64,000 bases of DNA from Chlorokybus atmophyticus (lineage: Eukaryota > Plantae > Mesostigma and Chlorokybus algae): NCBI GenBank assembly GCA_009103225.1, contig RHPI01002990.1, forward strand, positions 250,223 to 314,222. The letters are read 5' to 3'. A model generated the notes under the pieces. It did not search any database and was not told where the DNA came from. It saw only the letters and a program-made list of their open reading frames with translations. The translations under genes were made by a program, and so were the position numbers. This document shows, piece after piece, positions 37,832 through 43,800 of this stretch (positions within the stretch are counted from its first letter, which is position 1; each line of letters opens with the position of its first letter).

Positions 37832-40800
37832 ATGGCGATCTCCGCCAGGCGACGGCGGCGCCGCCTGGCTGCAACCTGGCTGCGGAACCCTCTCCTCATC
37901 CTTCTCCTCCTGCTGTTGGGGAGCCTCACACCACTGCGCCATGTGGCTGCAGGTGCGATTGACGGTTTCATACATTCAGATCTACGTGCTACGTACCTGG
38001 TCCAACCTGGTCATGATGTGCTAGTTAATCTATGGTGACTTATAGCGATCACTCCCTCACCATCGGCTGGTATTGCCAAATGAAGGTTTATGCGAATTTG
38101 CGTGCATACTATACCACTGCGTGCATTGTGCTGTATACAGAGCAAGTGTATGTAAACGACTCTAGGATGACACGACACCTGATTGGTCGTGATGAGCATT
38201 GATCTTGTGGTAGAGTTCCATACTTCACCGCTTGCAAGCGCACATGCCAGTTGCAGTGAGACTTGCCATCAGCACGCATGCGCGTGTGCAATGCAGCAAA
38301 AGCCAATATGTGCAACAATGCAAGTACTTGTTCAGCATGCACAGGAACACCCAATGTGCCCCATGTTGGCGTATAATGCGCAAAGCAATAAGCCACTGGT
38401 CTGTTGCAAATTTTGTGGGTTGATTTTCATAGCTCAACCAGCATGGCGGTCATTAACGCATGCTCGCACAGACTAGGCTTGTGCATGCAAACTGTCCAGT
38501 TTAGGCATGCGTTCACAATGCCATAACCATGTTTGACTATACCAGTCCTGTACGCGTGCAAGCAGCAATAGAATGGCAATCGTTGGTTAACAACTGTTGC
38601 TGTTGTAATTGTTGCTGCTATTGCCGCCTTTGTGGTCAGCAATGGCGCTGCTGCCACTGCTGCTGCTGCTGTTTTTGTGGTGGTGATTCTTGTGGTCGTG
38701 ATCGTGGTTCTGGTCATTGTGGTTGTTGCTGCTCCTGCTGCTGTCATTGCTGTCATTATTGTCATCATCGTCGTCGTCGTCGCTTTTGTTGTTGTCGCCG
38801 CTGCTGCTGCTGTCATCGCTGTCGTTGCTGTCACCGCTGTACATATCAACGCATTTAATGGGCAAAGCGCTAACTACAACCTTGGCTTATGTCTCAGCTG
38901 TAAGCGCCCCATCCCCATCCAACTCAACAGTGTTGACGCCCGCTCCCACTGCCGAGTCCCCTAACTACTCGCCCCCAGCCAGGTTGGATCCGGGCCCGCT
39001 GAAGGGCCCCACATCCCCACCTCCACAGCAAAATGCTTCACCACCTCCCAAATCACCTGGTACACTGCCTGTGGATGCACCTGCAAATGCGCCGGCACCT
39101 GAGGAAACCCCTGCAAAGGCGCCTCCTCCACCCACAGAACCACCGTTGGTGAGTTCCCCTGGGATTCCACCTCCCGGAAAGCCTACGGATCCCCCCTCCA
39201 AAGCACCCGATGCATCGCCTGCACCTGCACCGGGTGCGGGTGGAGCGCCTGTTGACTCGCCAAGTCAAGCACCACCTGGAAATGCACCTGAGACCGGCAA
39301 AGCCCCGCCAACGCAAGCACCGGGCAATGCGCCTGGAGCAGCTCCACCTGCTGCTGGCACGCCTGGCCAGGCACCTCAACCGGCCACTGGTAAAGCTCCT
39401 GAGAGCGGCCCCCCACAGCAAGCGCCTTCAAAAGCACCTGTGCAGGCTCCAGAGAGCGCGCCTGGGCAATCACCGCAGCAAAGACCTGGCAATGCTCCTC
39501 AAGGAGCGCCTGGAGGAGCACCTGGACAAGCGCCTGCACCCGATCTCGTGCCAGCGCCACAGCAAGGCCCCACAAAAGCTCCAGGACAAGCGCCTCCAAA
39601 TGCACCTCAACAAGCCCCTGGAGGAGCGCCTAGACAAGCGCCTGCACCCGGCCTCGTGCTAGCTCCGCAGCAAGGTCCCGTGAAAGCTCCTGGACAAGCG
39701 CCTCCAAATGCACCCCAACAAGCCCCAGGACAAGCCCCTCCCGGTGCACCTGGTCATGCACCACCCGGTGCTCCCATCCATGCACCTCCAGTTGCCCGCA
39801 ACCCTGCCCCGGCTCCAGGTGCGCCCCCAGCACCAGGTGGTGTAAAACAACCCCCACCTGGACCACGCGCACCGGGTCCCAACCTAGCCCCCCGCACGGC
39901 TCCTGCCCCAGGACCTCAGAAGGCCCCAACACTGGCTAAGCTGGACCCTGCCACCATGCTCGGGAGCCCCCTGGTAGGTGTCTCAATGCAATGTGTCGCT
40001 TTACCTCAAGGTACTGTTTCAGGGACACGTTGTGATGGTACTGCTTCTACTGATGCAGGTGCCAGCATTCGACCCGAGCGTGTTCACCTACTCTTTACCT
40101 CTTCCTGCCGGCGCCTCCAATGTGCTCGTCTTCAGTTACACACCTCTGCGCCCAGGCGACACGCTGCAATACGATGTTATCTCCCTCGACGGATATGGGC
40201 CCCCCGTGACGGCTCCCGGGTTTGACCAAAACAGCCCTCCTGGCCAGGAGGAGCCTCCTGCACCTGATGACAGCTACTACCCTGGGGAAGAGCCTCCATC
40301 ACCTAATGATGGTAACTACTATCCTGGGGATGCGCCTCCATCTCCTGATGATGGTTACTATCCTGGTGATGAACCTCCAGGCCCGGATGATGGATCCAAT
40401 GAGCCGCCTGCACCTGATGATGAGTACTACTACCCTGGGGATGAGCCTCCAGCACCTGGGGATCCCGCACCAGCACCTGCTGATGACTACTACCCAGGAG
40501 ATGAGCCACCCGCCCCTGGTGATGAGTACTACCCGCCTGACAGCCCTGCACCAGCACCTGGTGACGACTACTACTATCCTGGAGATGATACTCCGCCCTC
40601 TCCTGACGATGGGCCTGCACCGGCACCTGATGACTACTACCCTGATGAAGGGTCGCCCCCACCTGAGCAGTACCCTGGGGATGAGCCACCCGCACCCGAG
40701 CAATACCCTGGGGACGAGCCACCCGCACCTGAACAGTACCCTGGGGACGAGCCACCCCCACCTGAGGACTATCCTGGCGAGGGGCCACCCCCACCTGACT

Positions 40801-43800
40801 ATCCAGGGGATGAGCCTCCAGCTCCCGATGACTCGGTGTTAGAGCCTTCCCCGCCTGAGGAGACGTATCCACCTGATGCATCACCTCCACCAGAGCCACC
40901 ATCTGAGGATGCTCCACCCCCTCCAGGAGAAGGAGACTCTGCTCCTGTAGACTCTCCTCCTGTAGACGACTCTCCTCCACCACCTGAACTAACTCCTCCT
41001 CCACCTCCACCTGAGCCGTCTCCTCCTCCTCCACCACCTGAACCAACTCCTCCTCGGCCTCCTCCACCTCCACCTGAGCCGTCACCTCCGCCTCCGCCAC
41101 CATCCCCCCCTCCACCACCTCCCAGTAAGACATACCCTCCATTACCACCTCCTTCTCCCTCACCGCCTCCAGCTCCTCCCTCACCCCCTCCGCCTCCAAC
41201 CCCGCCTCCCCCTCCGCCACCATCACCCTCACCTCCTCCTCCTCCACCTTCTGCTTCTCCTCCCCCTCCTCCACCACCATCACCATCTCCCCCTCCGCCC
41301 AATCCCTTACCCTCACCCTCGCCCTCACCCACACCCTCACTACCTCCTCCTCCACCATCCCCTTCTCCACCACCACCACCTCCACCATCGCCTTCTCCTC
41401 CCCCTCCCCCTCCACCATCCCCTTCTCCACCACCACCACCTCCACCATCCCCTTCTCCTCCTCCTCCTCCACCATCCCCTTCTCCTCCTCCTCCACCTCC
41501 ACCTTCTCCTCCTCCACCATCCCCTTCTCCTCCTCCTCCACCTCCACCATCACCTTCGCCTCCTCCTCCTCCTGTGCGCAGGCGTCGCCTCCTTGCCACT
41601 GACACATCTGCCACAAGCACACAACAGCCACAGTACGTGCGCATGCAGTTGTATCAGGGCGGCAACGAGCTGAAGATGTGGATGAGTAGTGCTCCCGATG
41701 CGGTGTACATCATCATGGTTCAAAGAAATGCGTCCGCGGGGCCACCCTCACCGTTGCCGTTGCCACCACCGGGGGCACCACCCGCCCGTCCCGCCGTGGT
41801 GGACTTCCTCGAGGTCCCGCCCAACGCCACGCAGAGCACTGTTGCGCAGATCGTGTTTGATGCCAGGGATCAGACTAACGCAGTCCAGGGAGACAACTGC
41901 ACCGGATGCGTATTCTTCTGCAAGGTGGGCACACAACATGCGTATGCACACACGCGCACGATCATGCGCACACGCACATATGTACTTGTACGTTCTGAAC
42001 TTATAGATGCAATGGCCTCTCCTACTGTTGGCAATTGGACGTGTGTGTAGTTGGACAGCAACCAGGCGGAACAGTGCGCAGAGAAGGTGACGCTGGTGTA
42101 TGTGGACTTACCCGAGGGCCCACACACGTTCGTGGTGGAGGTGTACACGGCTCTGGGAGCGCGCACCGTGTACAACCACACATGGCTCGTCGGTACGCAC
42201 CCACACAACATCTCTTTTCTCCATCCCTCTCAACTCACTTCTACAAACCTTGCATCTCCCCACATGCAGACACAACACCGCCACGCGCCATCCTCGATAT
42301 CAACTCAGCGCCCGTCACCAACTACTCCGACGTGCAGCTCACCATCAGGTTTTCTGAGCCATGCTACAATGCCAGTGTTCCCATCACGTGCAACCCAACA
42401 TCATGCGTGGTACGTGCCCAAAACATCCATGCGACATACCACATGCTTCTGCCTGGCCTGGGGTTGATGATAAACATAATTTGCTCAGGTGCACTTACAG
42501 ACACGCGCGGTAAGGCATGCGCACAGACACACACTCTCTCGTCTTGTGCAGGTCAATGCCACAGGACCCTCTGCCCTCTCCACCCCCCAGTTCATCACAC
42601 TAGTCCCCAACCAGGTACACACCAACAACCACAACCACAACAACCACACCACCACCACCACCACCACCACAATCACAATCACCAACCCCTCCTCTCCTCC
42701 ACAGGTGTTTCACATTCAAGCCAAGTACGCCCAGGACGGCGCATACACCATTAGCATTCCAGCGGGCGTGTGCAGCGACGCGGCGGGCAACGCCAACGTT
42801 ATGTCCGTGTCGCGCGTAATCGTGTATGACAAGACGCCCCCCGAAGGTGTGATGGAAACAAAAACACTCGTCACCACGCCGTACGCGGATGATCAGAGGA
42901 GCGTGCAGTATATAGTGCAGCAGAGCGTGGTAGAGTATATGCTCTACTTCAGCGAACCCGTACAGGTGAGTAAAGATGTAATTTACTGAGTTATTGAACA
43001 GTGAGTGGAGCTGAATCGGGCAGTGACTGGTCTGCTTACAGGTATACACACATACGCACACGAGCTGGCGAGTGTGTTACACCCACATGCACAATTGCAC
43101 ACACAGAGATGTGCAAAGACCCCACGCACATACACAATTGTGGGTGTGTATCAATGCATACCGATACACACATGCGCAAGCACACACTCCCATAAAGAGG
43201 TGGCCTTGGACCTACTCAATGACCTGAACATAGTTATAACCCACACAAGCTACTCAGTGCCCTCAAGACAAAATACGGCTTCAACTTACATACTCACAAT
43301 CTCTGCCCCTGCTGCTCAGCCCCTTTCAAACTCTTCGCTCCTCTACACCAACGCCTTGCCGGTTTTCTTCCGCCCCCTCTCCGCCAACACAACAACAACA
43401 ACATCCACCTCCAACACCACCAACCTCATCTCCGCGGTCTCGTTCGCACTGCGGCCCACAAATGAGGGCCTCATGTCCGCCGCGTTGCCTGCCGGCACAG
43501 CCACGGATGCCGCGGGCAACGCTAATGCGCGTGACGTGCATGGGAAGGTGTTCTATGGTGAGTTGGTTGAGTACGTGTGTGTGCGTGTGTGTGCGTGTGG
43601 AGTGTTTACTGATTGGTTGTGCAGCGGACATGTCCCCGCCAACAGTCACAATCAAATGCGACGAGCGGTCGCCAACAACAGTCACAGACCTGTCATTCTT
43701 CATCCACTTCAGCGAACAGGTGACACACATTGTCCAGCTTTCTCTCTCCACCCATGCTTAAACTCTCCCATGCCCTCAGTTCGGCGTAAAATGTACACAT

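Follow-up and report, generated by a model that had tools for sequence, protein, structure and literature searches.

Can a folded domain be opened by a glycoprotein module of almost 480 residues and still close on itself? The question is raised by positions 40059–41726 of a 64,000-nucleotide stretch of the Chlorokybus atmophyticus genome (contig RHPI01002990.1, positions 250,223–314,222, forward strand; hereafter, the window), which appear to lie in one exon of a large gene for an extracellular hydroxyproline-rich glycoprotein of this streptophyte alga. An initial annotation, made from the sequence alone, had proposed that a cadherin-like β-sandwich begins at 40059, is interrupted, and resumes far downstream. 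The evidence leans toward a split sandwich of this type (Pfam family PF12733), with the loop between strands C′ and E expanded into a hydroxyproline-rich module and the two halves still pairing; that both pieces descend from one ancestral domain is probable. The encoded domain would be a seven-strand β-sandwich whose variable C′–E loop has grown to 479 residues, made up of ~240 acidic, Tyr-rich residues, ~210 residues of Ser-Pro rod, and a closing VRRRRLL; the 31-residue island past the rod would be the missing C-terminal half, and its packing with the first half would let the glycosylated insert project as a long loop.

The first half (40059–40193, + strand) comprises 45 residues from VPAFDP and includes three predicted strands. 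Short half-domains can slip under the filters of HMMER, and an independent PF12733 profile was therefore built; the Pfam gathering cut-off for the family is 24.2 bits. A degenerate DNA pattern for L-x-P-A-F-D-P-x4-Y-x-V was used to collect 120 bacterial loci, an initial profile from these loci yielded 287 domain copies within them, and, to avoid circularity, the working profile was made from 170 bacterial copies that lack the search motif. Three profile members checked with Pfam are PF12733 domains at 63–79 bits. Against this profile, the first half scores 16.0 bits over profile positions 18–53, a value equalled neither by any of 20,000 shuffles (shuffle maximum 11.9) nor by natural 49-residue fragments from the window; it is the top match among the 1,348 six-frame open reading frames (ORFs) of the window, and hhalign supports it with P 2e-6 and 89% probability. 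The piece shows the N-terminal hallmarks of the family, L-x-P-x-F-x-P-x4-Y followed by alternating strands, and in a relative sampled by RNA (run X2, described below) the hallmark P, F, and Y are kept and the amino-acid changes are conservative. At the level of sequence, the PF12733-type homology of the first half is secure, and the match to the start of the cadherin-like consensus reported in the initial annotation holds. The sandwich itself likely starts one exon earlier: the end of the preceding exon (APTLAKLDPATMLGSPL; 39923–39973, + strand), whose boundary a spliced RNA contig establishes, is likely the first strand. This tail resembles the "atLs.L" start of PF12733 domains, at a score of only -0.9 bits that is not significant alone.

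Is the rest of the domain present? The putative second half (YVRMQL...MVQR; 41634–41726, + strand) is ~31 residues long, was placed by the profile and by MAFFT, and also includes three predicted strands. It scores 4.1 bits over profile positions 57–98, complementary to the 18–53 of the first half; with 16.0 bits on one part and 4.1 on the other, the two pieces match consecutive, complementary parts of the PF12733 profile, and do so in order. The C-terminal positions of the family, L, G-x-N, and Y-x-I-x-V-x-R, are all carried and aligned, at a score that alone is near the 1% chance level. An unguided MAFFT alignment of the 562-residue stretch with 40 family domains places the C-terminal block of the family on residues 529–556, with the conserved L, G, Y, and R columns falling on residues 531, 534, 550, and 556. 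The island is thus rightly placed and ordered, but as sequence it is by itself weak evidence. The claim that it matches the remainder of the consensus stands as to the part of the profile and the order, but not as to strength, given 4.1 bits and a chance level of ~1%. Its boundaries also shift slightly: the sequence annotated at 41631–41726 is there, but the piece lies at 41634–41726 with its Met at 41643, so that the annotated start falls four residues before that Met.

The point at which the domain is interrupted is one that the family tolerates. Among 280 bacterial copies, profile positions 54–65 are the indel hot spot of PF12733: inserts of up to 40 residues occur at position 54, positions 58–65 are deleted in about one third of the copies, and an insert is found at position 64 in 160 of the 280. 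The algal insert falls between profile positions 53 and ~62, i.e., in this hot spot. The surroundings of the two pieces are informative as well. At ~60 and ~31 residues, neither is long enough for a whole domain, and both are flanked by Pro-rich sequence: the first has an Ala-Pro-rich region before it and the acidic repeats after it, and the second lies between the rod and a Pro-rich linker of 22 residues (41727–41792, + strand) that was read from the sequence. Beyond this linker, an Ig-like domain begins at 41793; the part in this exon (41793–41925, + strand) continues at 42051, past an intron at 41926–42050 across which loose ends of X2 RNA join ...CVFFCK to 42051. Could the island instead be part of that neighbor? 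This assignment was rejected because the Pro-rich linker separates the two and the next domain appears whole on its own. Short pieces, Pro-rich borders, and a complete-looking neighbor together argue that the halves do not belong to two separate complete domains.

What lies between the halves? A single open frame runs from 40059 to 41726, with 479 codons separating the first piece from the second, and the acidic DY repeats, the Ser-Pro rod, and the protease-like site that the initial annotation had placed there are all read in it. The first segment (40224–40949, + strand; 242 residues) was recognized by its composition (P 35%, D+E 27%, Y 10%) and by tandem units of 33–42 nt, and consists of acidic, Tyr-rich Pro repeats built from DDxYYPGDEPPAP and EQYPGDEPPAP units. 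Asp or Glu stands before nearly every Tyr in it (DDYY, DEYY, DSYY, EQY); plant tyrosylprotein sulfotransferase acts on Tyr in such a context, and the paired Tyr could, we presume, also serve cross-linking. The second segment (40950–41573, + strand; 208 residues, 73% Pro and 16% Ser, with tandem DNA periods, and seen in RNA as far as 41123) is a rod with 18 SPP+ blocks that bears the Ser-Pro(3 or more) signature of extensins. From this composition, the insert would be hydroxylated and glycosylated as a hydroxyproline-rich glycoprotein module.

The insert is not an intron. Contigs from three public runs, X1 and X2 among them, were placed on 38800–44300. The X1 contigs are 99–100% identical to the window and carry GT..AG joints, and X1 therefore holds spliced RNA from this organism; X2 comes from a relative at ~93% identity. 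The exon opens at 40059, after an 85-nt GT..AG intron of phase 0 (39974–40058, + strand) that is confirmed by an X1 contig with the spliced joint 39972/40058, which leaves out precisely 39973–40058, and a loose end of X2 matches the upstream exon. Two X1 contigs lie within the acidic repeats (40359–40524 and 40597–40807), a third (41597–41766) spans the end of the RRRRLL region, the second piece, and sequence beyond, and one 1,028-nt X2 contig opens on the last part of the upstream exon and covers 40058–41123. Relative to the window, X2 carries in-frame indels of 33 nt (one repeat unit fewer), 18 nt in total, and 6 nt at 40670–40704, 40952–40974, and 41052; close relatives thus differ in the number of repeats in the insert without loss of frame. 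With RNA contigs inside the insert and the frame maintained in the relative, removal of the whole insert as an intron was rejected. As an aside on public gene models, the sole public protein that matches 41643–41925, P0001 (403 aa, Chlorokybus), takes the Met of the second half as its start and, spliced from a donor near 41851, lacks the 24 residues VFDARDQ...CVFFCK; the loose ends of X2 RNA, in contrast, favor the donor at 41925. Such models seem to break the gene at the proline rod.

Structure prediction is compatible with closure of the two halves. Supplied with a family alignment, AlphaFold2 packs both into one Ig-like sandwich with moderate confidence: the predicted local distance difference test score (pLDDT) is 70–84 over residues 1–40 and 64–74 over residues 521–560, and the strands are predicted at residues 10–15, 21–26, and 35–42 of the first half and at 525–530, 535–543, and 548–556 of the second. 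In a fold search, 80–97 residues spanning model residues 1–562 align to single Ig-like sandwiches at Z 5–7 with root-mean-square deviations of 2.4–3 Å. The structural matches are generic Ig-like folds; a profile search of the PDB finds one solved PF12733-like domain only, 8yk1_A, which is absent from the top structural matches. A two-chain complex prediction for half 1 and half 2 gave a score of 0.01 and counts neither for nor against pairing.

Several results nevertheless weigh against a split sandwich that still folds. Pfam is silent for PF12733 on the exon and on each piece at E values of up to 10, in a search whose HMMER filters can hide weak matches, and the summed piecewise score of ~19 bits stays below the family cut-off. 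The 4.1 bits of the second half are matched or exceeded by 1.3% of its shuffles and 0.8% of the 49-residue fragments that occur naturally in the window, and hhalign gives this half P 0.06. AlphaFold2 run on the single sequence is uninformative (mean pLDDT 48.8), and the family alignment that produced the better model had already paired the halves and steered the outcome, so that the model speaks for compatibility and is not independent proof. Among the listed differences in the first half of X2, six change the amino acid and five are silent, which indicates only mild constraint. Protein searches with the first half and with the piece that joins the second half to the next domain found no relative outside Chlorokybus, so there is no continuous-domain orthologue to compare. 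Lastly, no RNA contig lies on 41124–41596, and since 41173–41578 was passed over as a repeat when the contigs were placed, RNA coverage of the rod is incomplete. The proposal that the halves form one domain has the family-guided model and the indel-site position of the insert on its side, but the silence of Pfam and the poor single-sequence model on the other.

How else could these features be read? Only the first piece might come from a cadherin-like domain, the ancestor having been destroyed by expansion of Pro-rich repeats, with the island an unrelated spacer of chance likeness and the whole a flexible, glycosylated linker that does not refold. The near-chance scores of the second half, the lack of a Pfam match, the poor single-sequence model, and the mild constraint on the first half in X2 all fit such a relic. 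Yet the island stands in the right order and register with every hallmark position present, it is the only stretch from the rod to the next linker that is not Pro-rich, and the insert sits exactly where the family tolerates indels; a relic would also leave both a 31-residue β-prone island and a 60-residue half-domain as orphans. We regard this account as rather doubtful. If it were correct and the second half a product of chance, the locus would hold merely a degraded domain beside an ordinary glycoprotein linker. The suspicion that the insert is overestimated because a hidden intron removes part or all of the rod (41124–41596) takes its force from the gap in RNA coverage and from the repeat passed over in placement, and appears highly improbable: RNA contigs lie on the first half, on the acidic repeats, and over the RRRRLL/second-half region, if not on 41124–41596; the frame is open throughout; no GT..AG joint was reported in 41124–41596; from the spliced start of the exon, the X2 contig extends 1,065 nt into the insert; and an X1 contig begins at 41597, where the passed-over repeat ends. 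Even without the rod, ~240 residues of acidic repeats would still split the domain.

The homology evidence that favors a sandwich closing within one chain serves equally well for a sandwich closing between chains, in which half 1 of one molecule would pair with half 2 of another to build head-to-tail chains or a wall network, i.e., a domain-swap polymer. Extensin rods are known to be stiff, and a spacer of ~450 residues, mostly of the polyproline type, should by that token disfavor closure within a chain. But nothing speaks directly for exchange between molecules, and with 242 residues in the acidic arm and 208 in the rod, the two are of comparable length, so that a within-chain hairpin is geometrically possible; closure between chains seems quite improbable. 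The split sandwich with its own halves paired remains the reading that we favor.

If the halves of the split sandwich do pair, what purpose would the basic motif that closes the rod serve? VRRRRLL (41574–41594, + strand) contains RRLL, agrees with the broader R-x-x-L motif, and also fits R-x-R-R, which we take to be a kexin-type site. It sits between the rod and the second half, outside the predicted strands; across all frames of the window, no other R[RK][LIVM]L comes after a Pro-rich run. A Pfam scan of the exon matched no family, SEA, GPS, and GAIN included; a cut, if there is one, would fall to a separate protease acting at a basic site and not to autoproteolysis. Precedent exists in plants: a subtilisin-like protease takes off the pro-region of type-1 pectin methylesterases in the Golgi, and RRLL and RKLL are the motifs at which it is cleaved (PMC4008260). 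A subtilase of the secretory pathway, of the S1P or kexin kind, may cut the algal protein after RRLL; the loop would then become a free arm, leaving a two-chain domain held together by its β-sheets. Cleavage at RRLL, β-strand complementation, and a force-separable joint, all envisaged in the initial annotation, are steps that we purely infer.

How does this arrangement compare with known systems? PF12733 domains, most of which belong to bacterial surface or carbohydrate-active proteins, share with the algal domain an extracellular setting, the L-x-P-A-F-D-P-x4-Y signature with the strands that follow it, the C-terminal G-x-N and Y-x-I-x-V-x-R, and a C′–E loop whose length varies across the family. 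Unlike them, the algal domain carries an interruption of 479 residues (the longest insert in the 280 bacterial copies is 40), its separate pieces fall below the Pfam cut-off, and its host is eukaryotic, with a gene that has introns, one of them within the domain. Discontinuous, or nested, domains resemble the proposed arrangement in that a folded domain is broken at a surface loop and its parts rejoin in space, but the algal insert is a low-complexity hydroxyproline-rich module with a protease-type tag and not a folded domain. The SEA domains of mucins and the GAIN/GPS modules of adhesion G-protein-coupled receptors and polycystin-1 offer a conceptual likeness only: a cut within an extracellular domain would leave two chains held by β-strand packing. 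Those modules, however, are self-cleaving, at an internal motif that is conserved, and lack any large insert, whereas the alga would need a separate protease acting at a basic site by a giant insert. Plant type-1 pectin methylesterases are likewise secreted wall proteins from the plant lineage and have the same four-residue RRLL motif (PMC4008260), but their cut parts two domains and frees the pro-region, while the putative algal cut would fall inside one domain. That the design had not been described in a green alga, as the initial annotation believed, holds within the searchable literature, where neither PF12733 in algae nor Chlorokybus extensins yielded a description of such a split.

What would it mean if the reading were right? 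Halves that refold would make this a folded domain that tolerates a glycoprotein insert of ~480 residues at a loop. The arrangement would hint at a way in which extensin-type rods are joined to globular modules in a relative of land plants that diverged early, and would also suggest great age for the RRLL-directed processing seen in wall proteins of land plants; a cleaved, two-chain sandwich would be a candidate for a link, in a wall protein of an alga, that mechanical force can part. One may go further and suppose a building principle of Chlorokybus, in which a glycoprotein rod with an R-R/K-L-L tag is set in a β-sandwich loop and cut by a Golgi subtilase, so that a wall-embedded arm is held by β-sheet packing alone; this would be a trans-cleaved, force-separable joint akin to SEA and GAIN that, at the root of the plant lineage, served to assemble the wall or to sense its integrity. 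In its entirety, this larger scheme is unlikely.

Other searches added little around the exon. Neither half found a match by phmmer among PDB sequences or a usable match in a feature search of the ESM Atlas, and a word-index protein search with residues 1–55 found none. An exhaustive search of representative proteins with 41610–41924 returned the Chlorokybus fragment P0001 (403 residues) and bacterial FN3 linkers only, and the latter were judged spurious. Pfam scans of the exon, both pieces, and 18 neighboring ORFs detected nothing in the region and only a weak Big_12 downstream; PKD-channel and TRP families had no match in the scans of the 18 downstream ORF pieces.

The remainder of the gene and its surroundings can be sketched from the sequence. 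Upstream, the exon at 38950–39920 encodes ~320 residues of Ala/Pro/Gln/Gly-rich repeats of the APGQAPPNAPQQ kind, an arabinogalactan-protein-like block that is distinct from the Ser-Pro rod. Downstream, the exons at 42290–44100 repeat "...PAG...D.AGNAN" motifs typical of bacterial Ig-like domains, and in the spliced fragment P0001 they give the Big_12 match, at 31.8 bits. Hydrophobic segments that may span a membrane lie at 45141–45542, 45890–46114, and 47327–48241, and a (CA/TG)n microsatellite of ~550 nt, apparently intronic or intergenic, lies within 47340–47900. On the minus strand, a 360-residue ORF (31837–32919) looks by eye like an aerobic Mg-protoporphyrin IX monomethyl ester cyclase of the CHL27/CRD1 type.

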